Below are positions 12,648 to 63,800 of a DNA stretch of 64,000 nucleotides, one piece after another. Origin of the DNA: Haliotis rufescens (Eukaryota); NCBI RefSeq assembly GCF_023055435.1, contig NW_025963890.1, positions 43,462,001 to 43,526,000 of the forward strand, written 5' to 3'. The notes below the pieces were generated by a model, which worked only from the letters and a program-made list of their open reading frames with translations, had not been told where the DNA came from and did no database searches. Every line of letters starts with the position of its first letter. Positions within the stretch are counted from its first letter, which is position 1. The translations under genes were made by a program, and so were the position numbers.

Positions 12648-15445
12648 ATGGCGACCCTAGCTGTGACGATCACACTGGTCATCTTGATATCAGGTACCTA
12701 TTTGCAATTTATAGAAATAGTATATATCAGTGAAATAAGCTTTGGTCTTGGATTTTTGTCATTTTCGCTCACTAAAATGTATGTAAACATAGGTAAAGGA
12801 GAATGTATTTCCCTGTATCAGTTAGAAACAGGTAACATTAACTGCAAAGGGGAATATGTTTTTGAAAAGTCATCGGTGGCTGATTTGATGTTGGTTACCC
12901 GCAAGTCACTCTTATCATTTCACCAGCAGACATTTCAGCTGAACCCGTGAAGATTCCGGGGTAGAATAGGTCTTCAATAACCCATGCTTGCCGTAAAAAG
13001 CGACTATGCTTGTCGTAAAAAGCGACTAACGGGATCGGGTGGTCAGGCTCGCTGACTTGGTTGATGCATGTCATCGGTCCCAATTGCGTTGATCCCAATT
13101 GCGTTGATCGATGCTCATGATATTAATCACTGGATTGTCTGGTCCAGACTCGATTATTTACAGACCGCCGTCATATAGCTGTAATATTGCTGAGTGTGGC
13201 GTTAAACAACCAACCAACCAACATTTCAGCTGAAAGCGTTCTTAATAAATTACACAATGTCGGACTGACTGTACCCATTGATGTGACAGTGATAAGCAGC
13301 TGGAATAAAATTTCTCGAAAGATGTGAAATTTTTTTATTTTCTTAATTAGCACTTTTTTCGTCACAGTGCCAACACTTGCACCTTCCAGTGGTCTCTGTA
13401 CCGACTGTGAGGACAATAAAAGAATATGTGTTGGAGGAGTGTGTGCGCTACGGTGCGTCAATCTGACGTCATCTGGACAGTGTCTCCAGTGTCGGGACTC
13501 CAGGTTCTATGGTAGACAGTGTGAACATGACTGTCCAGACACCTGTCTCAACTCTCGCTGTCAGCTTGACAACAGCCTGGTTATGTGTACAGAGGGATGT
13601 GTGGTCGGGAAGAAGGGAGACAACTGTGGGGCGGACTGTGATGCAGCATGCACACAGTGTGAACGTTATGGTGATGGTTGTACAGGACCGTGTCAGAATC
13701 CACGGTATTACGGTCCACTCTGTAGAACACCTTGTCCCCCAAGCTGTAGCGATGGATGTGATAAAGATAGGGGGAAATGTGGTACCTGTATAACAGGTTA
13801 CCTGGGAACGTACTGTAATGTTACCTGCTCTTCCCAATCTTGTATAACATGCGACAAAGATACAGAAAAGTGTACACAATGTGATGAGAGCCACATTGAG
13901 TGTAACGATGGAGTATGTCAGGGAGAAGCCTGCCACTCAGGTAAGGGCAGAGGATGTTTGTAAAATATAATTCAAATGAAAGCCTTTGGTTTATACTTAT
14001 CTCAGCATTATCTTCCTTCTTGTTGACCAGACACCCCGACCCGGGAAGATTCCGGGGTAGAATAGGTCTTCAGGTGACTATGCTTGTCGTAAAAGGCGAC
14101 GAACGGGATCGGGTGGTCAGGCTCGCTGACTTGGTTGATGAATGTCATCAATCCCAATTGCGTGGATCGATGTTCATGATATCAATCACTGGATTGTCTG
14201 GTCCAGACTCGACTATTTACAGACCGCCGTCATATAGCTGGAATATTGCTGAGTTCGGCGTAAAACAACAAAAAAACAACAACAACCAGACACCCGTACA
14301 TGAGATATAAAGTTGTTCACCTGGCGGCAATTATTTAATCGGGTCTAAATGTAGGCGTTCTACCGCTGTTTATTTCACTCATCATACATGTTTGAAATAA
14401 TCACAATATCAAGATAGTTGCTTTATGATAAGGTCTCTGACATAAACACTGCAGTTTAAGCTGCCCTATGATTAGCTCGATTGACTTCACATTATCATCC
14501 AAATCAGTTTGAAAACATTTTAAGATCTGTTTCGACTTAAATGGACGTAAAGTAACACTTCTGCAGATATCCGTTTCATTGAAACTATTATGTGCAGTTA
14601 GACACACTTATGAATAAAAACGAACTGTAGTTTATCGAACGTTTCAGATGCCACCACAGCCTTACCAGAGAAACCCGATGGTTTGACCACTGTCCACATC
14701 TTAATGATTGTTTGCTCCGTCCTGTCAACACTTCTGTTGGTCGGGGCTCTGCAGGCTGTTAAGAAGAAATGTAAAAAACGAAGAAGGTAAAAGAGTGATT
14801 TGAGGTTTCTACAAGAATACAGATTACACATTTACCGGAAAAATGCGGAGGATTTTACAATGTTACTATGCTGGTAAATGGTGAACTCTATAAGCTTCAG
14901 TGGTTGTTTCATTGATATGCAGGTCCCACCAGGATGCTATTACAGACTCTTCTACCCAAGCTGAAGGCAGTGGATCAAGTACGTATTTGGCGCATAAATA
15001 CTGGGAGATCAACGACCAGGACGTGGGCCCTGGTATGGAACAGGCTTTGTTGACCAACAGACGCAAACAGAGCGTGGCATTCGTCAAAGAATCTGTATAT
15101 GAACAGACGAGCAAAGAGAACAGGGTGAAGGAAGAGATCGATGTTGTGCCGGATGTTAAACCCAAAGTTGATGATACTGTAATCGCGAAGGTTGATGTTG
15201 CTCCGGTAGATGCGGTAGACTGTAACAAATCAGAATGGCATCCCGAGCATATCTATGAACCTGTGTCAGGCTCCAAGTTGGAAGGTGCTGAAGGACAATC
15301 ACACACAGTCACACACGAGGATAGGCAGATGAGCAGTGAGTCTCTGCAGTTGTTGGAATTAATCGCTGCATCTGCTAATGCAGATGTGAGATATCTAACA
15401 ACACGGAGCTCTGAGGACTCACATGATGACATTAGTGATGAGTGA
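12648..15445 (+). CDS. Receptor gene 2: EGF-repeat type-I membrane protein, ~426 aa
   Basis: Exons: 12648-12693 (MATLAVTITLVILIS), 13368-13940, 14648-14786 (TM ILMIVCSVLSTLLLVGALQAV then KKKCKKRRR), 14923-15445 (LAHKYWEINDQDV, HIYEPV, VRYLTT). AG/GT junctions, 1281 nt in frame. AATAAA at 15940. Confidence 0.9.
12944..13220 (+). mobile_element. SINE-like family B, full length (gene 2 intron)
   Basis: 14-bp TSD acatttcagctgaa. Confidence 0.9.
14039..14284 (+). mobile_element. SINE-like family B (gene 2 intron)
   Basis: Family B body and tail, TSD accagacaccc. Confidence 0.88.
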
Positions 15446-17090
15446 GGAAACAACGCTATAATATGTGATGTGTCCATACTATCCAGTGTTGTGATTATGC
15501 ATAGGTGGATGAGATACCAGTGTCATACCTGTTACAGCTATGAGAAACATATGTGCGTGTGGTGTGGATACGAAAGCACTACGTACTCTCTATTAGAATT
15601 GCTTCATCTTGTTGTGGGATATCCAGTGTCAAATGTTGTGTTATAGCTCTATACAGATGGTTGTAAATATGTAAACTACATCCGTTATTTTTTGTATGTA
15701 CATATCATGTTGCAAGGCATTTAAAATTTAACAATAATGAGTACATGCTCCAAACACAGCGGTAGTTAGTAATATGTGAGCCATATTGCAAGTATCAGCA
15801 TATTTATATGTCAAGCAAAGTAATATAGAGACGATTATTATCTCAGTATCGTCCTGTTAATGCAGAGCACCCTTTGTCGAATCATTGTTTCTACATGTGT
15901 ATATCGCTGTCTTGATATCATTGAACAAGGAGTTCAACAAATAAAATGTTTAATTCAAAGAACATTACGTTTTTCTTTAATGTATAAGATATTGTCAAAC
16001 GAATGGGTCAGCGTGTCGTAATCTAGTCAGCATTCAAGGTTCAACCGGATATTAATCCCGGAAATTAACTGCTGAGTGTGAACTTTGTTCTTTATAAACA
16101 TATTTTTCTGTCTGTTATAAGGGAAACGTGACATTCGGTGCGTTCTGTATTCAAAAATCAATATCTAAACGGAGGAGAAAGTGAATATTAAACATATAAA
16201 TTTAGCTCAGGATCCTGAAAGTCTATTGTAAGGCAAGGCGGTAATTCATCATATTTCAGGCAATGTTGACAAAACAATTATACACATGGTGGGCATACCA
16301 CAAAGTAGTATTATGTTTTGATGCACAGAAAGCATGACTTCGAGCAGGCCTTAAGTATATTGCTTTACCACTTAACAATACACAATAACGAATTCATCGT
16401 GGTGACATCACGATACCGTTATACAGATAGAAAAAGCCTAACCAACGCAGCTATTTACACGATCAAGTAGTTTTGCCATATGAAAATATAGCACAGTTGT
16501 GTAGTTGATCACTCCTCTGTAAGGGAGGTAGAGACATGACATGAGTGAAACTTCCTGTTACACTGCACCTGGTACAAAGTGTTATACTAACGCGGGAGAT
16601 GTTCACGAAACAACATGTTTCGAAACATAACGTATACCTATTCAGATTATCATTGTCTATAATTGAGAGTCACTTAACATTGCCAAGCTAATGTTTGTGC
16701 CTTTTCACTAGTCTGTGTATGTAGAATATGCCACTGGCGTAGGATAGTTATTAATATAGCAAAATATGTTTTCTTCGCTTTCTTGTTCAGAGTTCACAAA
16801 ATGTTAATTATGTGAGGACATGAAAATCAAAGCGGAATTACTGGAGGAAGATCCAACGATTATCTAAATGATAATGGAAAGAAATCGACAAGCAAAACTC
16901 GTTCATAAATCTTCCCACAAGTATGTACAAAGTGGTAGTAGAGATAGTATTAGTTATTGCTTCCACAGAAGGAGAGCTACCGGTAGGGCAGAGCATGGTT
17001 CCCTTTCCGCGGGCGCCAGGTGTCATCGCTGATACTCACTGGTCCATTCATATAATTTTCACCGTTTTGCGCCCAATGAAGTCCGTTTCG

Positions 17091-17358
17091 ACCCGTGAAG
17101 ATTCCGGGGTAGAATAGGTCTTCAGTAACCCATGCTTGCCGTAAAAGGTAACTATGCTTGTCGTAAAAGGCGGCTAACGGAATCGGGTGGTCAGGCTCGC
17201 TGGCTTGGTTGTTGCATGTCATCGATCCCAAATGCGTGGATCGATGCTCATGATATTAATCACTGGATGTTCTGGTTCAGACTCGATTATTTATAGACCG
17301 CCGTCATATAGCTGGAATATTGCTGCGTGAGGAGTTAAACAACAACCCAACCAACCAA
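17091..17358 (+). mobile_element. SINE-like family B, full length
   Basis: 13-bp TSD gaagtccgtttcg. Confidence 0.9.
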
Positions 17359-19517
17359 CGAAGTCCGTTTCGTTGGATGGTCAAAATGGTTCTGGCGTTG
17401 ACGTTTTATATTTAATTAGTTGAACATACCATTATTTTTTACAAATTTCATTGTTATCACGAGTCCGGAAACGGAGCGTATAAAAACACCTGGGTACTTT
17501 CTGAAATAATACACGTCACCTGTGAGTACATTAATAATTGATAAACGCACCGTGTTTCAAGTAGCCTAATTGATTCGACGCTACATGCCCCTGATAAACC
17601 GTTCACTGGCCATTTTGTGGTGATATGGACCTGAGACGTTCTGATCAGGGTTGTTTATTTGATGCCAAACAGTGACCAGGTGGTACTGTGTGTTTGAAAC
17701 AGTTGTGTGAGTCACTGAGGTTGGCTGTTTTCACCACAATGTCTGCATTATTCACTTTTATAAAATCTGTTGATGGTACCGTCCCCGATAGGCGTGCGGA
17801 GGAGGTTTCCCCTAAAATATTGATGACCCATAACTTTTTGTGTTTAAAATATTTGAATTCAGAATATTTTACTCATACGTTTCTTCGACGACATAAGTTA
17901 CATTATTTTTTCTCTTTTCAAGACTAAATGCAGGAGATGGTTCTACCTTGGTTCGCTTGATTTTATGGTGAATATTATATCAATGCTCCCTGGTGAGTGA
18001 TAAATACAGAATCTCACCCGTGTGTCTTTTGGTGTTAAATATGTCGATACAAGTTTAAAGCTTGACGAGGCGTTTTATCTTTTATGGACGAGTATTGATA
18101 TATATGATATCAAAAGAGACATTCTATTTATCATCTAAACATATTCTTCCACCTTATACACTTACTAAACAGTAATAACAAGTGTCTCGGGTTTATATCA
18201 GTCGAAAGTAGATTAGTGATGTCATTTGATTTCGACGTCATGGTAACAGATGAATGTCACAATAGTCTACCAAGCATTGTGAAGAAATTTCATCGAAGTG
18301 ATATCTCCTGTGGAAGCCTGTTTTGGATGATGAAATGTAAAATATACACATAGATTTATCATATTCAGTTACATGTTCATTTGCCAAACCATTTGAAATA
18401 GATCAGTTCAAACTGGATTAGGACCTCGAGATAGGAACGTGCCTTATTTAGCTTTTTTATTGAATTTTGTAAATTCATAAACATGTTTGTAGTTATCAAT
18501 TTGTTTAACATTGCAGCCCCGTGGGATACATAATGCCCTGGTAATCTTAGTGCAACGGATATCCCAAACCTATGTTAGAGTAAAGTTGTAGGATTATTTC
18601 ACTCTGTTAAAGGGGCACAGGACATCCTCACACTGTTTCGTTTCAGGGAAGTTGGAAATTGTGTGAATCATGAAGGTAAATTGTATTTTTGAGTCTAATA
18701 TATTGTTAATGATAATTCTATCAAATTTCGTATACCTACAAATGTACATCTATTTCTATCATGTTGAATGTGTCTTGAATATTGTCTTCCGCATGCATGT
18801 TGTTAATGGTAGTTGGGTTTTTTCATCAGAGGTACATCAGTGCAGTTAATCGTTTTAGCTTGCAAATGTATTTAAACAGCACAACCAGTATCACAGCCAC
18901 CTTATTATTCACGGACATGTCCTCATGAAACTGAATCATATTTCATGAGAAAATAATAAATATTCCCGCAAATAATGTGTTAGTTATTTAATGTTTGATG
19001 GCATTCAGTGCATATCACTGTAGGCCATTAGCAAAAATATTTCCGTTTTTCCCGTGCACCTAACACAACACCGGTTTCACTTAACATATTGATTGAGTTG
19101 GGTTTAACATAATGTTGAACAGTATTAAAATTTTACCTCGCACATCTACCCTCAGTGCAGTCTTATGTACTTGATTGTGGATACGTTTTGAAAATAACAA
19201 TCATGATAGTGACTCTTGTCTGCCCGATCGAGTCTAAATGTAAACTTCAGTTCTAAAACGCTTCGCTAAAGAGCAAAGGCGACGACCGTGCTCTATCCTT
19301 TGACAAAGTACGTTTTTTATTACGTGAAAATAGGATGACGTCATCAAGCTGTTAATTTACTTCCAATTGTAATTTAGTATCCTTTTGGTGATATAGCTCT
19401 GTCACTCATGTCAATCAAGATGGCGCATTCACATCAATTATCGATCGGTGAAATATTTTCTTTGACGAAAAATATTGAATTGAATATTATTCCATGGGAA
19501 GACACATATAGTGCATG

Positions 19518-20540
19518 CTGTACACACTACTGTTCTGCACACACTACTGCGCTGTACACACTACTGTTCTGTACACACTACTGTTCTGTACACACAACTG
19601 CGCTGTACACACTACTGTTCTGTACACACTACTGTTCTGTACACACTACTGTTCTGTACACACAACTGTGCTGTACACACTACTGCGCTGTACACACAAC
19701 TGCGCTGTACACACTACTCTGCTGTACACACTACTGTTCTGTACACACTACTGTTCTGTACACACTACTGTTCTGTACACACAACTGTGCTGTACACACT
19801 ACTGCGCTGTACACACAACTGCGCTGTACACACAACCGCGCTGTACACACAACTGTGCTGTACACACTACTGTGCTGTACACACAACTGTGCTGTACACA
19901 CAACTGCGCTGTACACACTACTGTTCTGTACACACTACTGTTCTGTACACACTACTGCGCTGTACACACAACTGCGCTGTACACACTACTGTGCTGTACA
20001 CACTACTGCGCTGTACACACAACTGCGCTGTACACACTACTGCGCTGTACACACAACTGCGCTGTACACACAACTGCGCTGTACACACTACTGTTCTGTA
20101 CACACTACTGTTCTGTACACACTACTGTTCTGTACACACTACTGTTCTGTACACACAACTGTGCTGTACACACTACTGCGCTGTACACACAACTGCGCTG
20201 TACACACAACTGCGCTGTACACACTACTGTGCTGTACACACAACTGTGCTGTACACACAACTGCGCTGTACACACTACTGTTCTGTTACACTACTGTTCT
20301 GTACACACAACTGTGCTGTACACACTACTGCGCTGTACACACAACTGCGCTGTACACACTACTGCGCTGTACACACAACTGCGCTGTACACACAACTGCG
20401 CTGTACACACTACTGTTCTGTACACACTACTGTTCTGTACACACTACTGTTCTGTACACACAACTGCGCTGTACACACTACTGTTCTGTACACACTACTG
20501 TGCTGTACACACTACTGTGCTGTACACACAACTGTGCTGT
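19518..20540. repeat. 17-bp minisatellite CTGTACACAC[TA]ACTG[TT/CG/TG], about 60 copies
   Basis: Directly visible tandem array with a small set of variant units. Confidence 0.97.
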
Positions 20541-20689
20541 GCTCACTACCACATCAGCCACAAGCGGGCGTTGGTGCCCTATTAATTATATCTGTCTTTG
20601 GGCATAGGAATAAGCAATCCTGTTGCTCAGCATAGGGCATTTAGCAGTACACTACTCTCAAACAAGTTGCTCTTCCTCCACCATGTTCA

Positions 20690-26400: not shown

Positions 26401-27713
26401 TATACTGAAGCAATTTGATTGAGCTCTGTTGAGATTGTTGTTGAGACTTTTAATGGACAAGGAAGAATTAACAGTTTTGACCATGAGTAATTTTAAAGGT
26501 CCAATTCAAAATAACAGGGTATATACTGACTGTATAAAATGTCAACACGATATCATAGTGTAAGTCCTGTTTAGTATATACCATAACGAGTTGGACAGTA
26601 CGACATCTGACATTGCCTTCATGTGATAGAGAACGGAGTATGGATACCCCTTTGGATTTTGTATGAGCTTGTTAGAAGCGCATTGCTTGTCTGTATTATG
26701 ATAAATTGAGTTCTGATCTATATTTTGTTATTTACAGGAGGACAAATTTCCCCTTTCCAAATAACCACTGGAATCCTGGCGATGATTGTCATTTTGGTGA
26801 TGGGGATATTGATCCTGCAACGATTATCAAAACGTGTGGAAAGGTGAGAAGATTACTTCACAAGCAATGACAAATAGGGGCTACAGAAAACTACTGTGTC
26901 ATGTCACTGGTACCAAATCGCAAACGCATTTCATCATTGTATGACTTGGTGATGTGATAATTGTCTTTAAAAGGCATGTCCTCATTCTTTTCAACACATC
27001 TGACAACATTTCAAGACTTTAATTATAATAGTTATGCTAATTATGTTTATTAGATAAGGCATATATCTGGTGGGCCAAAATTGCTCTTATGATGCCTAAT
27101 CCTTTTTTCAGCATCTACTTACACAGTGATATAACTGTTTTGCAGACGTGCCTCCTCAACGTCGCCTCCTCCGGAAGGTCGGACACAGCCGGGCCCAGCT
27201 GGTGATTCAGGGGATCTCCACGACAATAATGGAGGGACACAGCCAGGGCCTACAAGCAGCTCGGGGGATCTCCTCGACAGGGATGATTGGACAACAAAAT
27301 ACTGGGTAATCCATGACAGAGATGTTAATTCCACATCATCCTGCTCACAGACTCACAACGAAGTAATACAACTACGAAGAAAGAATTATGAAATTAGTAA
27401 ACCATTATCAGTTGATAAACAACCGAACGTTCATGGACGCGCAAGGACAACCAAGAGACACCTGTCCGAATCACCAGTTGACACAACATCATCGTTGTCC
27501 TTGTTGGGTGCAACGTCACATGTCAAAGGTGACGGTTTAAGATCAAAGTCAGCCCATGATATACGTGGCATCACTATATCGCCAGAAGTCAAGGAATTGA
27601 TAAAGAAAACTGATTCGATCATATTCATTGAGCAAAACTGCGACTTGTCAAGAGTGAGTGCCACTTATCTTAGTCCAACAGCTGACACATGTCATCATCA
27701 CACAAGTGAGTGA
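23412..27713 (+). CDS. Receptor gene 3: EGF-repeat type-I membrane protein, ~615 aa (longest ectodomain)
   Basis: Exons: 23412-23487 (MMLLTDSVRGVVTPVTLVLLVSTIA), 23975-25072, 26738-26843 (TM ITTGILAMIVILVMGILIL), 27146-27713 (WTTKYWVIHDRDV ... LIKKTDSIIFIEQNCDLSRVSATYLSP). 1848 nt in frame. Confidence 0.9.
24388..24890 (+). repeat. Intragenic 93-bp (31-aa) tandem module array in the gene 3 ectodomain
   Basis: Three near-identical consecutive EPGYMGDKCNVSCPPTCRDGCDKDTGEC[GD]SC units, followed by more diverged units. Confidence 0.95.
25350..25705 (+). pseudogene. Degenerate second ectodomain copy in gene 3 intron 2 (counterpart of 4723-5271)
   Basis: Same junction and flanks as the gene 1 remnant, with frameshifts. 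Confidence 0.75.
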
Positions 27714-33060: not shown

Positions 33061-33666
33061 TTATCATAGATAAGTAATAGGTAACGGGCACTGGGCAAAC
33101 TGGAGGCCGGAGGTAATTAGCACTGATGGAAGTGGGCCTTTTGTTTGCCTAGGTGCTGGATCTGATGTTTGATTATTCTGCAACTGGCATGATGGAGGAT
33201 CTTGTGGACGGGTGAAGAAAATTGAAAACCTCTGGGAACAAGGTTGCTATCTCGGCAACGGAGTAGGAAGCTCAGGTGGTTGTTGGACTAAACACTTTTT
33301 CTGATAGTCTTGATTTGTCGCTTATATTTGTATATGCTCAAACACTATTCGTCACGGAAAAAAATACTATTCGTCACAACACAGATGCAGGATGAAGACG
33401 AACATGATGATGCCATATACGCCAGTGTGTCATGACCGCCATAAAAAGTAGGTCACATTCTGCTGGTCCAGCAATTTCATCACCACTGACATCACGTAAA
33501 GCCAATTCATCAACGTCAGTAGTCGTCAGTTCTGAAATCCTATGAGAGCAGCTTCAGTGCCTTTCTCAGTGATGTAGGCGTGTTTACAGGCGGCGCCAGG
33601 AATGTATTGAGTAAGCTGCTGTAGTGTATAATTAAATAATAATAGATTTGGTAATGCTTTGTACAT

Positions 33667-38300: not shown

Positions 38301-39057
38301 GGTAGGGCGAGGGTGTGGAGGCGCCGTCATGAACGTTACGCCCAGTGTTGTGTACAGGAAGTTGACAGATTTCGAGGCGGAAGTGTCATGGTGTTGGGTG
38401 CTTTCTGTGACAATGCACGTTCCAGGCTTCTTGTCATCCGTGGCAACCTCAACGCTGCTGCTTACTGCGACCAGGTACTGGCACCATAACTTCTGCCTTT
38501 TATGGCAACACATGGACCCGGTTTGATTTTCCAACACGACAATGCCAGACCCCACACACCAATTTTGACAAGGAATTTCCTTCAGAATGCGGCCGTCAAG
38601 GTCTCCCGACCTCAATCCCATCGAACACGTCTGGGATGCTCTTGACAGAAGTCTGCGCACTCTCCAGAACCAACCACAGAATTTGCAAGATCTTGGCACC
38701 ATTTTGCAGCAACAATGGCGTCGTCTTCCCAATCATGTGTTCACAAGCATCACAAGGTCCATGCGGAGGCGTTGTGTGGCAGTTGTCAACGCACATGGTG
38801 GCCATACACGCTACTGAACTTGTGTGCCATCAGATTCTCGTGCTTGGGACTTATGATTTAAACTGTTGATGTTATTACCGAATACCGTAGGTGCTTGGAA
38901 CAAATTATGGTTACCACCGTTAATAAAAATACATCTTTGGACATTAATGATTAAAAGTTACCTTCTCTGATACATTTGTCCGTTGTATATCATATATGGG
39001 ATTACTTTTAAAAATGTGAAGTTTTTAATTTGACTCAGTATATAATGCGATGTGCAT

Positions 39058-44535: not shown

Positions 44536-45549
44536 CAACTTTTTTCCTGATATATAGCTAGCTTTTGGTTTACGGTTGAAATAATAATGCTAAAATGCAG
44601 TATCTGAAAATTCAAAGTGCAGTTCTGTTTCAATGAATGACTTGTCAAACACAGACATGTTATTGGCACACGCTCTTCTAAAGTTTGTTTTCCTTCCATA
44701 GTTTAATTTACGAGGAATGTGTATAGAGTTAATGTACCTTGTGTGCTGAACTGAGATAGGATTATTATGATATAATCCAACCAGAGACGAATTGTTGTGC
44801 AGTGTTTATGGGCCGTCTACAATGCCATGCATCAAAATCGTAGCGTCTATATTAACAATGTGGTCTAAAGGTATATGATTATTAAACTGTTGTGTAAAAT
44901 AAATATGATATATGCATCAGGTCAAAGTTTCATAGTGCTGTCGAGTTGTTTCCCGTCGTAAACAGCCAAAGGAAGTATATATTACCGCAGTGCATTAGCG
45001 AGCAATGTATGACGATAAATAACTTTAACTTTATCAATACATATAAATGTTATAACGGGACACACTTCAACGAATATGGAACTTACACATCATTTGATAG
45101 ATACAGTCTTTATTGACTACTACTATAGTCAATATGTATATTGACAGTTATTCAGCATGCATACGATGACATGGATTCTGATTACGTCTCTATTCAGAAA
45201 CGTTTATAAATGTGATAATTTTCTTATGTGAATCGAGGCTATATAACTAGTCAACGGGGTTTATGAAACTGTCACTAAGGTATGAAAAGTCAAACAAGTG
45301 CTTAACTTTACTGTCGCAGTGTGATGTCATATTCACCCAGCTATGTGTCTATGTGATCTCAATATCTGGGTGCTCTGTCACATGTCTGAAGTTGTGTTTA
45401 CATGACTGGGGACCTCGAAACTTCTGTATCATATTCCGTCGTAAACCCGGAATACCAAACACAACATATAACATGTGCCACTAAACCCCAATTGCCATGT
45501 TTGTTCTTGAATGTGTGTAAATCAAATCCTCATACGCGTGTCCTCTAAG

Positions 45550-45817
45550 ACCCGTGAAGATTCCGGGGTAGAATAGGTCTTCAGCAACCCATGTTTGCCG
45601 TAAAAGGCGACTATGCTTGTTGTAAGAGGCTACGAAGGGGATCGGGTGGTCAGGCTCGCGGACTTGGTTGAAACATGTCATCGATCCCAATTGCGTGGAT
45701 CGATGCTCATGATGTCAATCACTGGATTGTCTGGTCCAGACTCGATTATTTTACAGACCGCGGTCATATAGCTGGAATATTGCTGAGTGCGGCGTTAAAC
45801 AACAAACCAACCAACCA
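45550..45817 (+). mobile_element. SINE-like family B, full length
   Basis: 15-bp TSD acgcgtgtcctctaa. Confidence 0.9.
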
Positions 45818-48577: not shown

Positions 48578-51359
48578 ATGCCATCAAGGACAACATTCTC
48601 GGTGGTCCTGAACTCAGTGGTGCTGACATGTATTCTGCTGTTATTTCCCATTGAAGGTTAGTAAAGGAATAATGTTTCACATGTAGTCAGAAGCCTGGTA
48701 GATCATGGACTCATTAATTCAAACGTTTCGAGGAGTGAAATAGTGTTTCATTTGAAGGAGTAAATGGATGCTAGATAGTTTGATTACATTTATTTTATTT
48801 TTCCATTTTGCAAGGTGTTTTCTTTTGTGCTGACATCTCTTTCCTGTGTTATCTCTGCCTTTTTCTCACTGCAACGACAGCTCCTACATCAACGACACTG
48901 TGTAACGAGTGTGACGGTAACAACGTTACCTGTGAAAATGGCGTGTGTCTACTACGTTGCGTCCGTTTGACGTCATCTGGAGAGTGTCTCCAGTGTCTTG
49001 ACTCCAGGTTCTATGGTAAACAGTGTGAACATGACTGTCCAGACACCTGTCTCAACTCTCGCTGTCTGATGAACAACACCCGTGTTGTGTGTACAGAGGG
49101 ATGTGTGGCCGGCAAGAAGGGAGATAACTGTGCCTCTTCTTGTCCTTCGTCCTGCTCACAATGTGAACAGACAGGAGATGCCTGTATTGGACCATGTCAA
49201 AACGACCAGTATTACGGTTCACAATGTGAAACTCCCTGTCCTGATAACTGTTTGGATGGCTGTAGGAATGACACGGGGAGCTGCAAAAGCTGCGTGGACG
49301 GTTACACAGGAGAGTACTGTAATGGATGTGTGGTGGGCTACAGTGGGGGGTACTGTAACATTGCTTGTCCCCCACACTGCCTGGACGTATGTGATAAAGA
49401 CAAGGGTGAGTGTGGCAGCTGTGTGACAGGTTACACAGGGACGTTCTGTAATGAAACCTGTCCCTCCAACTGTACTCCGTGTGAGCAACGTAATGGGCAG
49501 TGCATTGGACCATGCCCCGACAGCCTGTACTACGGCCCTTTCTGTTCTATACAATGCCCTACAAGTTGTGCGGGATGCGACAAGACGACAGGGAGATGCA
49601 TTCTCTGTGCCGATGGCTACACACAGTGTACGGACGGTCTCTGTCAGAAGGGTGACTGTGACTCAGGTGGGTGGTACACATGAACTTTTGCCTAAACATC
49701 AAACATGTTCATATGCTATTTAATAGCTATTAAAAGTATATCGACATAAGTCTATTTGATATTGATCCATAAACACATGCTCATCATATAGTCGGAATCG
49801 AACAATCGCCTTCTATTGACTAAGAGAGGGGTTTTGTCACTTTTATTTTATCTAAAATGTAATTTTCGTTTTAGTGAGGATTTGACAAACAAGTTAAGAT
49901 AAAATGATGTCTTTAAAAAGAAACAAAATGACTAGAATATAACGAAAGTACCTCCTGTCACTGTCTCCGATATAATATTATTTACATTGGTATACATGTG
50001 TGTGATATGATTTACAATGTACATGTAACCGTTTTTTTCTATTAACACGTTTCAAACGTTAGATGTGCGATGAATTAAATATTTCATCTTGTCCTTTCAT
50101 TAAAAAGGGAGGGCAATATTACAATGAAGTGCATACATTATATCCGTGTTGGGAATCGAACCTGGGCTTTCTGCGTGACTGGCGAAAGGCTTTAATGACT
50201 CGCAATTGACTTGTCTTTGCATGTGTTTGTGACGTGTACCGGTGGGGCGGGATACGCTCGCATTTTCTCGAACACCTGGTTTCTTTATTATTTGATAGTG
50301 ATTCATAAACACTTGCTCATGACATAGTAGGGATCGGAACAGTCGACTCTGCTTTGTGCAGATATTTCTATTGGATATGGAAGGGGTTTTGTAGCTTTAT
50401 TTATATCTAGGCTACACCTCGCTTCGAACATAATAAACAGTGTACTCATATTTGTATTACTACAGGTAACACGATTTTGACTCTGAAAGTGACAGCTGGA
50501 GTGCTGGCGATGGCTGTGTTGCTTGGAACGATCTTGGCGGTGGTCATTCTGGTCAGACGCAGGAGCAAATGCCAACACGGGTAAGAATGTTAATGTACTA
50601 TCATAATCACATAGCAAATACATGTTTAGAATACGTCCATAATATTAGCTTCTTGTTTTCTCATATGCAAACACAGTTGTGAATGTGAATCTGAAATTTT
50701 AGAATTGAAAGTGTTTAAATTATATGTCACTTTCAGAATAATGTGCTTGAATAATGATTCATCAACACTAAGGGGACTATTTACTAAACTGCACTTTTTT
50801 TCTCAATAGTGAGATGTCTCCCCGTCAAGACATTCCACAGGACCTTGGTCAGAGTGACAGCAATGAATACTGGGCCCACAAATACTGGGAAATACATGAC
50901 AAGGAATCTGGCTCTGAATCTGGGTCAAACATCTCACCTGTGCTCCCGTTACCCTATAGACGATCTGAACAAGCCAAGGATATCCCCCTAGGAAATGTCA
51001 CAGTAAGGAAACCAATGCCGTATAATACTGACGTGTCACCGGCGGCTGTGGTACACCAGGATGGACATGATTCGACTTATGAACCATTTGTTGTGGAATC
51101 GCCACAGTCGGACGTGGTGGACAGTGTCGTGGCTGGTGCAGCAGAGGAGGACATCATGGGTACGACACTCAGTAACTCTGGTCCTCGGACAAATCAGGAA
51201 GGGGGCGGAGTCATGAAGAATCCCATCCAACCTCATATTCAGCACCTTATCAGAAAGACGGAATCTATAATAGCTATTGAACAACATCTTGATTTAGCAA
51301 ATATCAATGTCAAATATCTTACACCTGATAAAGTTAACACCAGTTCAAATACATTATAA
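48578..51359 (+). CDS. Receptor gene 5: EGF-repeat type-I membrane protein, ~509 aa
   Basis: Exons: 48578-48656 (MPSRTTFSVVLNSVVLTCILLLFPIE), 48881-49666, 50466-50580 (TM VTAGVLAMAVLLGTILAVVILV), 50810-51359 (YWAHKYWEIHDKE ... LIRKTESIIAIEQHLDLANINVKYLTP). 1530 nt in frame. AATAAA ~51436. Confidence 0.9.
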
Positions 51360-54013: not shown

Positions 54014-57000
54014 ATGGCGCCTTTCGGTTCGATATTGCGACACCCGGTGTTCTGTGTGGTAGCGGCCATCTGCATGGTACCCGTCACAGCAGGTTTGTTT
54101 TTAACACCAATAATTTATGATAAATGGAGAGTAACGATCATGAATACTTTTTAGTAAACAATGTTTAAAGCTGAAACAAATACAAATATACTGTTCATAT
54201 TGCCTATTCGAAATATTGCAGATTGCGATATATACTTAAACAATTTGTAGTCATTTCTGGTTTCCGAGCTCAAAAGTTGTATTTTCAACGGAGACCGTTT
54301 ATAATCTAATGTACTAAGTGTCATTGTTATGATTCTATTAAGAATGTTGCAATTCCATTGATTAAAAAAGTACCAGGTGCCGAAACAATACATTTCAATG
54401 TAGACCTCCAAATCATGTCTCGTCTGACTTGTCACATGATCAGTATTGACCCTTCACGTGATGAATATTGACTCGTCTGCTAGAAACAAGATGGCGTCTT
54501 GTATACTACCATTTTCCGCTTTGCAGCTAAGTTACTGTAAAGAAACAGATAACGGCTTAATGGCTTCATAAATTTGAAAGTGAATTTCGGTATAACAAAA
54601 CAACTGATTACTTTTGACAAGGTCATTATGCGAAAAAAAGGAGCCTCGGACCCGACTGATTCGTCGGTCTGACGAGACCCCGGCCGTCGGTCTCGATCCG
54701 GTCAGACGATCTCAGGGGTCGGGTCCTCGGGTCCTTGTTTTCGCATATGGACCTATTAAGAGTAATTTTTTGTTTATTGTTTATCACTTTTTGTGAAAGG
54801 TTCTTCAGTGTGCTCCTCCTGCACCGGTAACAACGTGACCTGTGCTGACGGTATATGTCTGCCTCGCTGTGTCAATGTGACGTCCTCTGGAGAGTGTCTC
54901 ATGTGCCGTGATTTCATGTTTCACGGGGTACAGTGTGAAACCCTCTGTCCACACACCTGTCTCAACGCGCGTTGTCAGATGAACAACTCCCATGTTGTTT
55001 GCAAAGAGGGATGCGTGGCTGGCAAGAAGGGAGATAACTGTGGTGTTGACTGTCCGCCATCTTGTACACACTGTGTAGGGGATGAATGTATAGGTCCATG
55101 TTTGAACCCCCGGTATTTTGGTCCTAAATGTAAAACACCATGTCCCGAGGACTGTAATAGTGGCTGCGATAAAAACACAGGGAAATGCAAACCATGTTCT
55201 GTAGGTTACATGGGGGAGCACTGTACCACTGTTTGCCCCTCGGGATGTAAAGATGGGTGTCACCAGGAGACAGGGGCATGTAACAGCTGCATGCCTTGGT
55301 ACGGTGGGGACTATTGTGACGTTTGTCAGACAGGGTACCGCGGGAAGTACTGTAACATTAATTGCCCAGCCTTATGTACAGCGTGTGAGCGCCATGGGAA
55401 TAAGTGTATCGGAGCTTGCCTGAATATTTGGAATTACGGTCAATATTGTAATCTCTCATGCCCATCCAACTGTAGAGAGAGGTGCCAGAAGTTGACGGGG
55501 GAGTGTGATGGTTGTGTACCGGGGTTTAGAGGCACATATTGTAACGTTACCTGTCCAGTAAACTGCACAGAGTGTACGCGTCTTGCTGATGAGTGTGTGG
55601 AACCGTGTACTGACAGCAAGTCCTATGGAGCATCCTGCCAACACCACTGCCCAGTCAACTGCAAGGACGGCTGTTACAGACTGACGGGCGACTGCATCAA
55701 CTGTAACCCTGGTTACAGAGGGAGATACTGTAAGCTTCCGTGCAGCAATGGAGCATGTAATCCAGGTGAAGTTATTACAGGAGACTGTTTACACCCCTTT
55801 GGATTTTCTTTAGAAATGAGTGAGTGAGTGAGTGAGTTGGGTTTAACGCCGCTGTTAACATTATTCCAGTTATATCACGGCATGTCAGCTTAATGTGGGA
55901 GGAAAGTCCGAAAGTGATGCAGGTCTAAGACGTTTACCACTTCGGTGAAACCCACGAGCACGGATATGGTGCTGACAAACCTAGAAACATAATTGGGACG
56001 AACCGGGATTCGAACCCACAATCATAGGTTTCTGGCGTGCCCAAGGGACGCAACTCTGCACAGCGAATCGCGGCGCCTAAGACGACTGGTCCACCCGTGC
56101 CCCCTCTTTAGAAATGGTATATGGTATATGATATTCATGCTTGGTTAAAATGAATGTATTACAGGCAGTAAAGATTAAACGGTATAAACAAATTGGAAAT
56201 ATAATCTTTTTATAGCAATGGCTGCAACGGCGTATTGATGTGAGATCAGGAGTGAAATTATGTAGAATAAGGGGTAATATAGTGGTAAATAAGAACATTG
56301 CGAAAAGCATGACAAGTTCTAGCCCATCTAGTTCTTGTCGAGGTTGTTTGATGCTTGATCAGGGTTACGGCATTCGAGGCCTCGGTGGGGCTTTTGGGGA
56401 CGTGTGGAGGACGCATCGGTGACGAAAATGCTTTTGGCTTGTGCCGTTTGTTACCGTGTTTTTTTTAGGTGTAAAAAATGACTTGCCTTTGCATGTGTTT
56501 GTCACTGGTGTCACCGATGGGGCAAGATGCAATCACCTTTTCGCGAACACCTAGTATCACCACTATTTGATAGAGATTCATAAACACATGGTAATGATAT
56601 AGTAGGAATCGTACAACCAACAAGAGATTTCTATTGAATATGGAGGGGTTGTTGTCGCTTTTAATGTAATTGCAATGGTTCCGTTTGTCATTCTAATTGA
56701 TGCGAAATATTTCTGAATATATAATCTATATTGAACTTTCAACTAGCGATGATTATGCATTCATATATATCATTTTAGGTGACCCGAGGCTGACTACGAA
56801 AGTCGTTGGTGGCGCAGTAGCTGTGGTGGTGCTGCTGGGCTTGTCTATAGCTGGGTCGGTGCTAATGAAGCGTTATAGAAGCCACCATAGGTAGGTATAG
56901 GGTCTGTAGTCATATCGTTTAAACATCATTACCTCATTAAAACGGTGTGTCACTTAAAACGATTCAACTGCATCAAATAATCTATACTTTAAACATGTTC

Positions 57001-58143
57001 ATATCAGTGCCCTGCTTATATCACTAACCCGCTTTTCTGAGATCTCACTTTAGATATTATGTCAGGAAAATTTAGAACATACTTTCAATACACATATTTA
57101 TCACATTGTATAGTTTTACAATGATACATGTTCCATTTAATCGTTATATTATTCCACCCGTGAAGATTCCGGGGAAGAATAGGTCTTCAGCAACCCATGC
57201 TTGCCTTAAAAGGTGACTATGCTTGTCGTAAAAGGCGACTAACGGGATCGGGTGGTCAGGCTCGCTGACTTGGTTGATGCATGTAATCGATCCCAATTGC
57301 GTGGATCGATGCTCATGACATTAATCACTGGATTGTCTGGTCCAGACTCGATTATTTACAGACCGCCGTCATATAGCTGAAATATTGCTGAGTGCGGCGT
57401 TAAACAACCAACCAACCAACCAACCAACGTTATATTATTCCGTTCCTTGACTAGTATTCAGTTGGTTAGATATGTTTGTCTGGTGACTAACTGAAAAGCA
57501 GTTGTGAAACAAGTACTGAACACATTCTATGTTTGTATTTGACAGTCGGGTTCCTGCCGCCGCTTGCCGAGCTGAAACAACACGTCGATGCAACTGTGGC
57601 GATTACTGGACACACAAATACTGGGAAATAAATGAACAGGACGTGAACTCGGATCAATGTTTAGAGGAAGTAGCTCGGCCCACTTCGCGTTATCCCCATA
57701 CACTGGCAAGAACAACCCGCGCTGAAAGCAGACCAGAGAAACCGGAACATGAACGACGGGGGTCCAACAAAATAGAGGAACAAAACGCCAACTCTATATC
57801 TGTTCCAGGGACTCTCAATATTGAGACATTTCAGGGGTCTAACACTGGGGCAGGATTGACAATGACTGCTTCCTACTGCGAAGCACGTCCTACTGTAATT
57901 CATGATGATGATGATGATGATGGCTTGTATCCAATTGATGAGAAAGTATCTTTTCTGAACACTGAAGGCGATCCAATACTTGCCTCAGCCAAAAGTGAAA
58001 ATGGTATTGATTATTGTCATATGTCACTTGACACCCAAAGGTTGATTAAAAAGACTGATTCGGTCCTATTCATAGAGCAAAACTGTGACATGTCCAAAGT
58101 CAACGTCAAATATCTGACCCCAAAGTCCAAACTTAAAACTTAA
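54014..58143 (+). CDS. Receptor gene 6: EGF-repeat type-I membrane protein, ~584 aa (most diverged ectodomain)
   Basis: Exons: 54014-54092 (MAPFGSILRHPVFCVVAAICMVPVTA), 54800 (or 54809)-55765, 56779-56890 (TM VVGGAVAVVVLLGLSIAGSVLM), 57546-58143 (YWTHKYWEINEQDV ... LIKKTDSVLFIEQNCDMSKVNVKYLTP). 1755 nt in frame. Confidence 0.9.
54620..54754. mobile_element. Palindromic MITE just upstream of the gene 6 ectodomain acceptor
   Basis: aggtcattatgcgaaaa / ttttcgcatatggacct ends with nested internal inverted arms (ggacccgac/gtcgggtcc, tctgac/gtcaga, gagacc/ggtctc). Confidence 0.8.
55819..56104 (-). mobile_element. SINE family A, full length
   Basis: 12-bp TSD tctttagaaatg. Confidence 0.9.
57156..57427 (+). 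mobile_element. SINE-like family B, full length
   Basis: 14-bp TSD cgttatattattcc. Confidence 0.9.
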
Positions 58144-58649
58144 ACCATGGTCGTGTCCGTTTACATTGTACAGAGAGACAATTGAAAATGTATACTTATA
58201 ATTATAAAATAAAATATAATCACGTCACATACTATTTAATTTTTTTGTCATTTTGTTAATAATTTTACCACGTTGGATACCATGGATACCATGGATAATA
58301 AGTATGAGAGAATTGTGTCCTATCTCAAAACATTGCGTTCTATGTGACATTCACCTTTAGTATATCGGCTTATGAAAGAACACAATATATTTGCCTAGAA
58401 TCTTGGCAACAAGGTTTAAAACATTTTCTCAAAAAGAGAAAAAATGATGCTGCCAGTTTTACCACGAACTTTGGTGTTACATTTGCGAAACAATCAAGAA
58501 ACACTTCGTTCACAAAGGTTGAGTAGAGGAGTGGAAATATCACGTTATATTTCCCTTGTGACAGAATGCTTTGCATAGCTACGACATGCTATGCTAGTTC
58601 ACGCAAAGAGAACAAGAAACATTTTGCCACTAATAGTCTCTGTGCAAAG

Positions 58650-59165
58650 TGGTCAGGTCACACACCAGGCGGAGTTAGGCAACGTTGGTTGCGGAGAGTA
58701 GTTGGATGGGTGACCGTGTTCGGCGCCTGTGACGCCTGCATGGGTGTCTATCCTGCCTCACATTGAAGCACATGTAGCATACAGGTGGCTTTGTTCGAAA
58801 TACGCCCATGTTTTCCCAGCAGCGAATGGGTACCCGGTAGGATGACAACCGGCGGCTTGGGTTTGTTTTGTTTTGTTTGTTTGTTTGTTGTTTAACGCCG
58901 CACTCAGCAATATTCCAGCTATATGACGGCGGTCTGTAAATAATCGAGTCTGGACCAGACAATCCAGCGATTGATAACATGAGCATCGATCCACGCAATC
59001 GGGATCGATGACATGCATTAACCAAGTCAGCGAGCCTGACCACCCGTTCCCGATCCCGATCCCGTTAGTCGCCTTTCGCCAAGCATGGGTTGCTGAAAAC
59101 CTATTCTACCCTGGATCTTTACGGGCCCAGCTTGGGTTGGACTCTCGCCAGGGAGCTGAGAATGA
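58650..59165 (+). mobile_element. SINE family E (5S-like plus Deu/Nin-like) with a family B element (58864-59125, minus) inserted
   Basis: agttaggcaacgttgg...agtagttggatgggtgaccg and cccagcagcgaatgggtacc; gcttgggtt is duplicated around the insert. Confidence 0.65.
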
Positions 59166-59560
59166 AAATCGAATGCACCGTAATCCAATGGCCGCGGTGA
59201 AAGTGTGCCCTTAAGCTTTGAGCAAGAAAAATCCGTAATACAAATGGAATATTATTATAGCAAAGTTTGATATAATAATATACACCTCTATATGCACACT
59301 GAATTTCATATTCACTGCATATATACTTTCTGTAAAAGAAGAAACATTGCTCTCGATTATTATGCACTACAACACATGAGTGTCCAAGAAGCGGTATCAT
59401 ACTGGTTTTAACCGATGTCACATGTAACTGATAAATGTAAAAAGTAAAACACGACAAAAATAAATTGTCCTTTAACATTTTTTGAATAATTTACAAAGAA
59501 CCTTGACGTGGAATTAATCATGTTACTATAAGTTACTGTTCTTTTTAATTAAACCATAAT

Positions 59561-60703: not shown

Positions 60704-60866
60704 AGTAATTCAAGAATGTGAACAGATGTTGGCGGATTACAACGTCATGGATCTAGACTACTCGGCTTATAAATAATTTCATTTCATCTTCCTCGTCATT
60801 AGTTTCACGACCGTTTCATAAGCCCGTATGTAGCACTTACAGGACCTGGTGCACAAGATAAGCTTC

Positions 60867-63800
60867 ATGTCAGCCATGCTGGTTATAATGAAGCTGCTGC
60901 TTTTCGTAACAGGTAAGTACTTTGATGCAAAAAAGTAAACCAGATATGATTGACTCGTTTATTGCTTTGCATTTACGGCAAACCCCTTACAATACTGAAA
61001 CTGTTATTCTTCCGTGTTTGCTGGTATAAGAAGGCCACAGCAAGTTGATGACTTCTCCGGAGTCTCCTCGTCGCCTATCTAAAATACCCCTTAATTCCTC
61101 AGATGATAATTTCTACCTTGCTGGTAGAAAGGGTAAGTGTTTCATAACATCTTCCCTTCCCTTACCCGTGAATATGTTTTGTGACATAAATCGTAACATT
61201 CATCATTACACCTGTCTTGTAATTTCCTTCGAACCGTGAAGATCCGGGGTAGAATAGGTCTTCAGCAACCCATGCTTGCCGTAAAAGGTGACTAACGGGA
61301 TCGGGTGGTCAGGCTCGCTGACTTGGTTGATGCATGTCATTGATCCCAATTGCGTGGATCGATGCTCATGATATTACTCACTGGATTGTCTGGTCCAGAC
61401 TCGATTATTTACAGACCGCTGTCATGTAAGCTGAAATATTGCTGAGAGCGGCGTTAAACAACAAAACCCAGAAGGATATTTGTAACTGCAACGTGAACGA
61501 AACAAGAGAGTTTGGGATAACACCAACTTAAAATTAGTACTACTGAATGATCGTGAGAAATGGGCTTCACACATTATACCCGTGTGGAAATCGAGCCCGG
61601 GATTTCGACGTGACGACAGACGCTTTTACCACTAGGCTACCCCACCGCCCCTGTTATCAGAGTGAAGGAGTTGTATAAACTGAGTATATCAAGGAATACA
61701 TGTTTCTTATTCTTTGAGTTGGAGTTCTAATGAAGTTATGTTTCTCACTGCAGCAATAGCTGTTTCGTCGAGTAAACCTTGTACCAACTGTGACGGTAAC
61801 AACGTGACCTGTGTCGACGGCGTGTGTCTACCTCGCTGTGTCAGTGGAGAGTGTCTACACTGTCGGGACTCCAGGTTCTATGGTAAACACTGTGAACAGG
61901 ACTGTCCAGACACCTGTGTCAACTCTCGCTGTCAGATGGACGACACCCGTGTTGTGTGTACAGAGGGATGTGTGGCCGGCAAGAAGGGAGATAACTGTGG
62001 AGTGAACTGTGATGCCGCGTGTTCGCAGTGTGAACGTTATGGCAAGGACTGTACGGGACGTTGTCAGGACCCTCGATACTACGGTCCCCTGTGTAGGACA
62101 GCTTGTCCTTCCAGCTGTCGAGGTAGATGTGATAAAGACACAGGGGAGTGTGACAAATGTGATTCAGGCTACAACGGAAGGTACAATATAAGTACATAAA
62201 ACTGTATNNNNNNNNNNNNNNNNNNNNNNNNNNNNNNNNNNNNNNNNNNNNNNNNNNNNNNNNNNNNNNNNNNNNNNNNNNNNNNNNNNNNNNNNNNNNN
62301 NNNNNNNNNNNNNNNNNNNNNNNNNNNNNNNNNNNNNNNNNNNNNNNNNNNNNNNNNNNNGCGGCATTCATTCTACAAAAGATAAAATATAAAAAAATAT
62401 ATATGGAAAATGCTTGACGTAAAAGGCGCTAACGGGATCGGGTGGTCAGGCTCGCTGACTTGATTGATGCATGTCATCGTATCCCAATTGCGTGGATCGA
62501 TTCTCATGATGTCTATCATTGTATTGTCTGGTCTCGAGTATTTCCAGACCGCCGCCATATAGCTGGAATATTGCTGAGTGCGGCGTTAACCAACAAACAA
62601 AGCAAAGGAAACGCATATGGAATACGTCATATGATAACTTATTTAGTTCTATATTTAACGTTATCGTTTACAAAATTAAATTTGTTGGAAGTTACTAAAC
62701 TGTCAAATTCATCTGTCAGTAGTGAAGAGATGTGTCTGAGATGCGGACCCCAGTTCCTCTACTGTGACGGACAGTGCTTCCAGTGCATTGGCGACAACTG
62801 CCACAACTCTCCCTGTGGGACACGTAACTAGTTTATTTTATTGCAAATATCATGGTAAACTTTATTATTAGATCGTTTATACGGAATAACAAAGTAATGT
62901 TTATTGAAACTCATCATAAGCTTCATGTTTATGTTCTTATAAATTATATACCTGATTTTACAATCATATTTAAGAATGTCGTTGTCAAAGTTGATCAATT
63001 ACTGAACAACTAGTTACAAAGACGACGAAACAATTTCCAACATTTTGTACAAATTTAAATATTTTGTCAATAATGCATTGTGAATTCCATGTATGAATCT
63101 CTCTCTCCACCCTCTTTGTCTTCGCTGGCTCAAGAAAAGTTACACTAAAATGTATATAATGTTTCTGTCATGTATATTGTTCTTTATGCAGGACACACAT
63201 ATCACATCCTACAAGTTGTATCGGGAATCCTCGCAGTGATTGTACTTATTGGGTCAGCCTGTGTTGTGGTAAATCTAGCCAGACGAAAGACCAGATGTCG
63301 AAAGAGGTAATAATTTATGTCTAATGATAAATGTTAACAAATACAAATTTGTGTTAATCGAGAGTTATCTAACCCTTTCCCTACCTCGAATAATAACTAA
63401 GTTTTAAAAGCATCTTACAGTCTTACAGTTGAAAAGGCTTGTCCAAAGACTTGTCTCCATTCGTTGAGACTCATACTCCGTCCTGATGACCATCACAATA
63501 TCAAACGAAGAGGAGAGTAGGGGACGTACTGGGGACAGAAGTTGGCTGACACTGTGGCTAGCCGACACACTTGTGTCTAAACCTTGGTAATACCTCTTTG
63601 TTATATAACCAATCTAACTGTACAATTAAGAGTGTGAACCTTTTGTTTTACAGAAAGACCACCCAGTCCGGGGAAGAGGCCACAGACGGGAGAGATGTCT
63701 CGAAGAGCGATGGCAGTGGTCATTGGGCTCACAAGTACTGGGAAATACACGATAAAGCCACAGATACCGATTCGTATGTAAGCATTTTGTCTTTAAATGG

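Follow-up and report, generated by a model that had tools for sequence, protein, structure and literature searches.

A Conserved YxxI-Centred Island in the Cytoplasmic Tails of Tandem EGF-Repeat Receptor Genes of Abalones

The DNA analysed here is a 64-kb stretch of the Haliotis rufescens genome (contig NW_025963890.1, designated C112; positions 43,462,001-43,526,000 of a 1.33-Gb assembly) and is referred to below as the window. It has a GC content of 0.41 and contains a single run of N at 62208-62360. Seven tandem genes (g1-g7) lie on the + strand, and the gene plan consists of at least one Cys-rich EGF-repeat exon followed by a small transmembrane (TM) exon and a tail exon. The subject of this report is a short string with the core Y-x-x-I in the tail exons, designated block A, together with a second conserved block near the C-terminus, designated block B. 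Judged by sequence comparison, block A is a real short linear motif in the predicted-disordered tails of MEGF/SREC-like single-pass receptors, and it has been found so far only in abalones.

The encoded proteins have type I topology, a single TM helix and multiple EGF-like repeats of the form CxxGxxGxxC. Pfam gave a weak EGF_laminin/EGF_TEN signal only for the ectodomain exons of the window. The exons were searched singly, and the only join made was a local frame check of g6 along an RNA contig. This contig of 1,560 nucleotides (run X10) aligns with 54931-55763, 56777-56888 and 57544-58149, corresponding to the EGF, TM and tail exons, and thereby confirms the exon order for g6. After placement of the GT-AG boundaries, the three exons end at 55765, span 56779-56890 and span 57546-58143, respectively, and the joined frame is open. 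The TM-tail junction of g6 is also crossed by contigs from two more RNA runs. The TM-plus-tail sequence of g3 is letter-for-letter identical to H. rufescens XP_046382112.2. Each of the motif-bearing tail exons is preceded by a good polypyrimidine-AG acceptor, and the acceptor intron phase is the same in all six, the exon starting on the third base of a codon. The TM and tail exons of these six genes are as follows.

14698-14751, + strand: g2 TM segment
14923-15445, + strand: g2 tail exon, acceptor to stop (acceptor and frame)
26710-26844, + strand: g3 TM exon (open-frame bounds, approximate)
27146-27713, + strand: g3 tail exon (splice to TM exon agrees with XP_046382112.2)
39831-39965, + strand: g4 TM exon (open-frame bounds, approximate)
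40241-40778, + strand: g4 tail exon (acceptor and frame)
50411-50581, + strand: g5 TM exon (open-frame bounds, approximate)
50810-51359, + strand: g5 tail exon (acceptor and frame)
56779-56890, + strand: g6 TM exon (RNA-supported)
57546-58143, + strand: g6 tail exon (RNA contig joins EGF, TM and tail exons)
63149-63307, + strand: g7 TM exon (open-frame bounds, approximate; orthologue mapping)
63654-64000, + strand: g7 tail exon, cut by the window end (remainder, including block B, read from L010:1423-2046)

The original prediction, made from the letters of the window, had placed a conserved ten-residue motif in six of the seven receptors. A six-frame scan found KYWxI exactly six times in the window, always on the + strand and with the peptides that had been quoted. 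The six tail exons carry [WL]-x-[HT]-K-Y-W-[EV]-I-[HN]-[DE], with the K codons at 14996, 27297, 40338, 50880, 57616 and 63733.

14987-15016, + strand: g2 block A, LAHKYWEIND; peptide YLAHKYWEINDQDV
27288-27317, + strand: g3 block A, WTTKYWVIHD (TxYxxI pattern); peptide DWTTKYWVIHDRDV; same as XP_046382112.2
40329-40358, + strand: g4 block A, WTTKYWEIHD (TxYxxI pattern); peptide DWTTKYWEIHDRDV
50871-50900, + strand: g5 block A, WAHKYWEIHD; peptide YWAHKYWEIHDKES
57607-57636, + strand: g6 block A, WTHKYWEINE; peptide YWTHKYWEINEQDV; covered by spliced RNA contigs
63724-63753, + strand: g7 block A, WAHKYWEIHD; peptide HWAHKYWEIHDKAT

The tyrosine of the motif lies 24-51 codons into the tail exon. 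It had been called membrane-proximal; it does lie on the cytoplasmic side of the TM helix, but at a distance of about 33-61 residues from it. The g6 transcripts carry an A>G change at 57617 that converts the K of the motif to R. In g7, a second YxxI (YVSI) follows YWEI after nine residues (63733-63786), and this arrangement, which resembles an ITAM (immunoreceptor tyrosine-based activation motif), is kept in the H. asinina orthologue P0005.

Searching the 1.33-Gb genome with the strict DNA pattern KYW-x-I-[HN]-[DE] gave 14 matches versus 1 in the reversed control, and 6 of the 14 are the window genes. For comparison across loci and species, 29 tail records were assembled; the 29th (L027) is an open reading frame of 83 residues with block B only, leaving 28 motif-bearing tails from four Haliotis species. 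The Y and the I at +3 (numbered from the Y) are invariant in 28/28. At the other positions the paralogues and orthologues show K to R or T, W(-4) to L, Q or V, W(+1) to S or C, and H/N(+4) to Y, G, D, R or L. The block A sequences of other array members include SLAHRYWEIGD, TVGHRYWDIDV, DYQSHKYSEIYD, DYWTKKYWEIYD and NVTYCEIED. Among the orthologues, that of g6 reads HRYWEINE in H. asinina and H. rubra, that of g7 reads LAQTYWEIRD in H. asinina, and that of g3 reads DWTTTYWVILD in H. cracherodii. The consensus W-x-[HT]-K-Y-W-E-I-[HN]-[DE] given originally is thus over-specified: the ten-residue form is confined to the six window genes, and only Y and I(+3) are fixed in the 28 tails. The working consensus for block A is [KRT]-Y-[WSC]-[EDV]-I-x-[DEV], or [KR]-Y-W-[ED]-I-x-[DE] in a narrower form, with the core Y-x-x-I. 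Usually two aromatic residues occupy -5/-4, with an acidic residue lying upstream of them, and the core is followed by an acidic/Ser run that takes the form [DE]-x-[DE]-x-[DN]-[ST]-[DE]-[SQ] in most copies.

Selection on the motif was gauged from the proportions of synonymous (pS) and nonsynonymous (pN) differences between paralogues and from the protein identity of orthologues in each region of the tail. Across g2-g7, the ten codons of the motif have a pS of 0.88 (saturated) and a pN of 0.13; over ten lineages the pN/pS of the motif is 0.34. For the g5-g7 pair, pN is 0.00 in the motif versus 0.55 across the remainder of the tail, and pS is about 0.8-1.0 in either region. Between H. rufescens and H. 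asinina or H. rubra, 53/60 residues (88%) are identical in block A and 139/168 in block B, versus 522/950 (55%) in the rest of the tail. The Fisher p values against the rest of the tail are 1e-7 for block A and 2e-12 for block B, and they are somewhat optimistic because one paralogue was counted twice. Block A is under protein-level purifying selection, and the lack of such selection across orthologues, which would have refuted the original prediction, was not observed.

A shared string in tandem paralogues, of which g3 and g4 are recent duplicates, might have no function of its own and reflect recent ancestry, gene conversion among the copies, or a constraint on RNA or DNA such as a splicing enhancer. 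This explanation is highly improbable. The synonymous sites of the motif are saturated and its amino acids are kept, which excludes gene conversion and nucleotide-level constraint; the flanks have diverged beyond alignment; the motif is retained in orthologues with tails only 55% identical elsewhere; and unlinked subfamilies located on other contigs retain it too.

The sequence around the motif had been described as unalignable. The flanks indeed do not align, but a second region near the C-terminus does. The six tails and 11 paralogue lineages align at two islands only, blocks A and B, and Y and I are the sole invariant residues of the first. Block B is a C-terminal block of about 28 residues, LI[KR]KTDSIIFIEQNCDLS.V.V.YL[TS]P, conserved at least as well as block A. 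In full it reads Q-x-L-[IT]-[KR]-K-T-[DEN]-S-I-[IL]-F-I-E-[QE]-N-C-D-L-S-x-V-x-V-x-Y-L-[TSA]-[PT] and is present in g3-g7 and all other array members, with S, E, Y and L invariant. A conserved dileucine signal ([DE]xxxL[LI]) at the start of block B was considered and rejected, as only some copies have it.

15320-15403, + strand: g2 block B, degenerate (…SSESLQLLELIAASANADVRYLTT)
27594-27677, + strand: g3 block B, ELIKKTDSIIFIEQNCDLSRVSATYLSP
40638-40721, + strand: g4 block B
51243-51326, + strand: g5 block B
58039-58122, + strand: g6 block B, helix predicted by AlphaFold2 (pLDDT 75-81)
within L010:1423-2046: g7 block B, just past the window end

The g6 tail was modelled with AlphaFold2 from an alignment of 15 rows and was predicted as a disordered chain with a mean predicted local distance difference test score (pLDDT) of 54. 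Block A was without secondary structure (pLDDT about 57), and block B formed two short helices at the pLDDT listed above. Since disorder is predicted at A and helices at B, the model has block A behaving as a linear motif within disordered sequence and block B as a binding element that is already structured.

The family extends well beyond the seven genes originally reported. A profile of the six tails identified 18 tail exons in the genome, all in a single + strand array at C112:43.32-43.54 Mb. A wider profile added one tail exon at 43.56 Mb, which brings the array, g1 included, to about 20 genes over 240 kb. Genome-wide, 54 matches to the relaxed pattern [KR]YW[ED]Ix[DE] were obtained versus 10 in the control. 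The motif was located in tail-like open frames behind TM exons at C112:34.59 and 34.60 Mb, where MEGF-type ectodomain exons lie upstream, in six genes at C605:45.4-46.3 Mb, at C605:40.25 Mb, at C605:48.20 Mb, and at C46:4.11 Mb with a duplicate on C148.

The tails of this sister subfamily (L043, L063-L069 and L071) read …RYW[ED]I[RH][DE].D… S-Y-[ST]-H-L … [KRS]-Y-[IL]-[TSK]-P. They comprise block A, a YxxL island and a C-terminal Y-[IL]-[TS]-P as in block B. When both tail types were aligned jointly, only three columns were invariant, namely Y and I in block A and Y in the C-terminal island. A profile of the C605 type matched 70 places in the genome at E<=0.01, and these are spread over more than a dozen contigs. 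By profile match rather than by reading, 50-60 loci is a fair estimate, because some matches are two pieces of a single frame or haplotig copies. Where ectodomain exons of the sister subfamily were seen, they encode MEGF-type EGF repeats about 35% identical to those of g6. The H. rubra orthologue of the C605:40.25 Mb gene (L071), P0027, is a complete protein of 217 residues, of which about 40 are extracellular, and it has a TM helix and the full tail cassette.

Block A had been presented as a motif standing alone. From these alignments it is instead the first island of a tail cassette that the genes have in common and that comprises two or three conserved islands, each centred on a tyrosine; the C-terminal block ends in [KR]-Y-[LI]-[TS]-P, and the sister subfamily adds S-Y-[ST]-H-L. 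Within Haliotis, many diversified EGF-repeat ectodomains are followed by this cassette.

A hidden Markov model of the six tails was searched against 1.84 billion representative proteins. Ten matches were obtained at E<=1e-3, all from Haliotis (rufescens, cracherodii, rubra and asinina) and annotated as MEGF6/10/11-like, SCARF2-like, CED-1-like, PEAR1-like or uncharacterised. Word-indexed protein searches with the tail region of P0006, a mixed tail alignment and P0027 returned Haliotis only; these searches are limited by length and word matching, and their silence elsewhere is weak evidence of absence. The array-type tail therefore appears to be restricted to abalones at HMMER sensitivity, the exhaustive search having covered the array-type profile only. 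No Pfam family reached the cut-off for the tails or for those of five full-length Haliotis members, and a profile search of the PDB with the tail gave no significant match (best E 0.38). The ESM Atlas yielded no usable match for the g6 tail, and for P0027 it returned look-alikes only, with scores of 0.80-0.87 that fall below the meaningful level (<0.9). The literature, searched for the motif string and separately for MEGF/SREC proteins of abalone, yielded nothing relevant. Consistent with the original description of an uncharacterised motif, block A thus matched no described domain fragment in Pfam, the PDB or the literature searched.

The nearest functional precedents are Megf10, Draper and CED-1. 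These are defined by an EMI-plus-EGF ectodomain and a tail with NPxY plus an ITAM or YxxL, and the tyrosine motifs of Draper and Megf10 are substrates of Src-family kinases, with Syk/Shark, GULP/CED-6, Crk and Corkscrew as their readers (PMC8092387, PMC6219719). The abalone proteins share the type I single-pass form and the strings of EGF-like repeats; tail function in the known receptors resides in a few tyrosine motifs of a disordered tail, and several abalone members are named MEGF10/11-like or CED-1-like by NCBI. The YWEI-x9-YVSI arrangement of the g7 tail also fits the ITAM definition used for Draper, YxxI/L-x6-12-YxxI/L (PMC6219719); only g7 and its H. asinina orthologue fit this pattern, and most tails do not. 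No EMI domain was detected by Pfam in the ectodomain exons or in the five full-length Haliotis members, which gave weak EGF_laminin/EGF_TEN signals only. NPxY is absent from all 29 tail records in a regular-expression scan, and YxxL is absent from the H. rufescens tails of the array in a pattern scan, in agreement with the earlier statement that the NPxY/YxxL pair of CED-1/Draper/MEGF10 is missing. In addition, the abalone tail aligns with no non-Haliotis protein in the searches made. With EMI undetected and both tail motifs absent from the H. rufescens array, the array genes are, as far as their sequences can tell, not members of the Megf10/Draper/CED-1 group in the strict sense.

The architecture is compatible with that of the class F scavenger receptors (SREC/SCARF1 and SCARF2), in which an N-terminal run of EGF-like repeats, with no EMI domain, precedes a single TM helix and a long disordered tail rich in Ser, Thr and Pro. 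Several members carry the automatic NCBI name 'scavenger receptor class F member 2-like', but the tail cassette (A and B) has no match outside Haliotis among the 1.84 billion proteins.

The Y-x-x-[IL] core in the tails of tandemly duplicated, fast-diversifying receptors is also reminiscent of paired immune receptors with immunoreceptor tyrosine-based inhibitory (ITIM), switch (ITSM) or activation motifs. A pattern scan bore out the previous observation that TKYWxI of g3 and g4 matches TxYxx[VI]; the ITSM pattern T-x-Y-x-x-[VI] is met only by these two genes (TKYW[EV]I) and the H. cracherodii g3 orthologue, as a pattern match. The ITIM pattern [SIVL]-x-Y-x-x-[ILV] fits only four upstream copies (VTYCEI), the six window motifs having H or T at -2. 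In most abalone copies position -2 is H, K or Q, and neither pattern fits. The abalone ectodomains are EGF repeats rather than Ig or lectin domains, and the likeness to immunoreceptors is by pattern match only. P0027, with its very short ectodomain, TM helix and three conserved tail tyrosine motifs, resembles transmembrane adaptors such as LAT and SCIMP. There is no sequence homology to these proteins; SCIMP occurs among the weak ESM Atlas feature look-alikes, whose sub-threshold scores make the resemblance a lead only.

The preferred reading, held tentatively with a probability of about 0.45, is that the tail tyrosines are phosphorylated and dock SH2 proteins. Y-x-E-I resembles pYEEI, the optimum of Src-family SH2 domains, and YxxP is the Crk/Nck-type SH2 consensus. 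Clustering of the receptors would lead to phosphorylation of the tail tyrosines by a Src-family kinase, and pY-x-x-I, together with pYxxL and pYxxP, would then recruit SH2 proteins, as in the tails of Draper and MEGF10. The unphosphorylated YxxI might additionally be read by the mu2 subunit of AP-2. Three points weigh against phosphotyrosine docking. Preferred Src-family substrate or SH2 sites do not typically have a basic residue at -1 and Trp at +1. The invariant Y and hydrophobic residue (Φ) at +3 are exactly what AP-2 needs in a YxxΦ signal, and since both functions require just these residues, docking and sorting are inseparable by sequence alone. Finally, about 12 residues are conserved, starting with an acidic residue and Tyr at about -5/-6 and ending with an acidic residue at +5; a minimal SH2 or mu2 site is shorter, and a different, lineage-specific reader may be involved.

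The second of these points is the starting point for an explanation in which block A is a constitutive sorting signal. The mu subunit of AP-2 (or of AP-1 or AP-3) would read the unphosphorylated YxxΦ, and the acidic Ser-rich run would act as a CK2/PACS-type cluster, giving endocytosis and recycling of a scavenger-type receptor. By pattern, the abalone tails resemble known mu2 ligands: Y-x-x-[LIMFV] is found in 28/28 motif-bearing tails in a context predicted to be disordered, at tens of residues from the membrane (33-61 in the window) and with the acidic/Ser run following in most copies, and the two sole invariant residues are those that mu2 requires. Class F scavenger receptors are endocytic, and several members bear the SCARF2-like name. 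The conserved [KR] at -1, W at +1, acidic residue at +5 and positions further upstream, however, are not required by mu2 and would not be needed in a bare YxxΦ. The two further conserved tyrosines of the cassette (YxxL and YxxP) suit a multi-site phosphotyrosine scaffold better, and P0027 bears the cassette without a ligand-binding ectodomain. Sorting as the primary role is accordingly regarded as possible but somewhat unlikely, and phosphotyrosine docking and YxxΦ sorting are not mutually exclusive.

The length of the conserved region allows a further explanation, namely that block A binds a partner that is neither an SH2 nor a mu protein through its aromatic and acidic residues (Y-W…K-Y-W-E-I-x-D). 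The partner could recognise a W-acidic sequence or one like the LC3-interacting region (LIR), could be a lineage-specific module, or could be block B, in the same tail or in a neighbouring one, against which block A would pack. Conservation over about 12 residues including the second aromatic pair at -5/-4 in most copies, retention of Trp at +1 in most paralogues, and the predicted helical character of block B, which could serve as a binding surface, are in keeping with this. The Trp residues are nevertheless replaced in intact conserved paralogues (S or C at +1; L, Q or V at -4), where Y and I never change, and the AlphaFold2 model contains no contact-stabilised structure at block A. Basic residues ahead of the Y do not match the LIR and W-acidic consensus. 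A partner of this kind is quite unlikely. The specific LIR and W-acidic (kinesin light chain) readings were rejected in view of the basic residues ahead of the aromatic residue and the variability of W.

An extension of phosphotyrosine docking would make the cassette YWEI…(YxHL)…KY[IL][TS]P the abalone counterpart of the vertebrate ITAM/ITIM, a common phosphotyrosine tail behind some 70-90 diversifying EGF-repeat ectodomains and at least one adaptor-like protein. Changes at -2 or the presence of a second YxxI (VTYCEI, TKYWEI and YWEI-x9-YVSI) would tune inhibition and activation in an independently evolved mollusc repertoire of paired receptors. This proposal is unlikely, but were such a scaffold with activating and inhibitory variants to exist, it would mean that signalling logic of the immunoreceptor kind arose independently in an animal of commercial and ecological importance. 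The expansions of MEGF/SREC-like genes in molluscs are huge and poorly understood, and automatic names such as MEGF6/10/11, PEAR1, CED-1 and SCARF2 mislead, the defining tails being absent. A cassette under selection with two or three tyrosines provides both a handle on receptor signalling and a signature for sorting the family. At present block A constitutes a solid comparative-genomics lead for mollusc immunobiology, an apparently abalone-specific variant of familiar tyrosine motifs in the tails of phagocytic or scavenger-type receptors.

The remaining gene of the window, g1, has a tail exon in the same intron phase.

8352-8696, + strand: g1 tail exon, EHSYDNIDN … ETIVVFLPKPSVHVHYINTTP, possible degenerate blocks A and B

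In a MAFFT alignment, the Y, I and Y of this tail align with those of the family, and the Y-x-x-I core may thus be present in all seven window genes, g1 (EHSYDNIDN) included. The MAFFT result is suggestive, but homology of the g1 tail to the family was rejected because the hhalign comparison was not significant; the g1 tail is unique in the genome. An EGF-repeat exon is internally duplicated in the ectodomain of g1 (3747-4490 and 4743-5262, in blocks 84-90% identical).

The run of N falls within g7.

62208-62360, no strand: assembly gap, inside a g7 intron and in no exon or motif

The gap starts about 30 nucleotides past the donor of the g7 EGF exon (…AAG/GTACAA) and 1.3 kb upstream of the g7 motif. 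When the H. asinina orthologue of g7 was mapped using tblastn, residues 5-169 aligned with 61684-62172, residues 172-215 with 62718-62849, residues 208-236 with the TM exon and residues 245-350 with the tail exon. No orthologue residues are missing across the gap, which is therefore intronic. A predicted isoform of another g7 orthologue (P0010, H. cracherodii XP_071118511.1) joins the EGF exon straight to the tail exon and skips the TM exon; this isoform, an annotation model only, would place the motif in a product without a TM helix.

Several repeats and transposon-like frames lie between and within the genes. A tandem repeat of about 1.2 kb at 19378-20632, between g2 and g3, is open in all three + frames (…HYCSVHTTVLYTLLRCT… units). 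A long pair of frames on the minus strand at 31793-33148, between g3 and g4, is transposon-derived in appearance, and a transposase-like open frame occupies 37779-38866 (+ strand) in g4, within the intron that separates its EGF and TM exons. A short interspersed repeat (translated …PDHPIPLVAFYDKHSRLLRQAWVAEDLFYPGIFTG…) occurs in both orientations at 10150-10443, 12898-13122, 16980-17255, 45484-45714, 58978-59211 and 62376-62585, and it has enormous read depth in all read sets, for example at 57120-57480.

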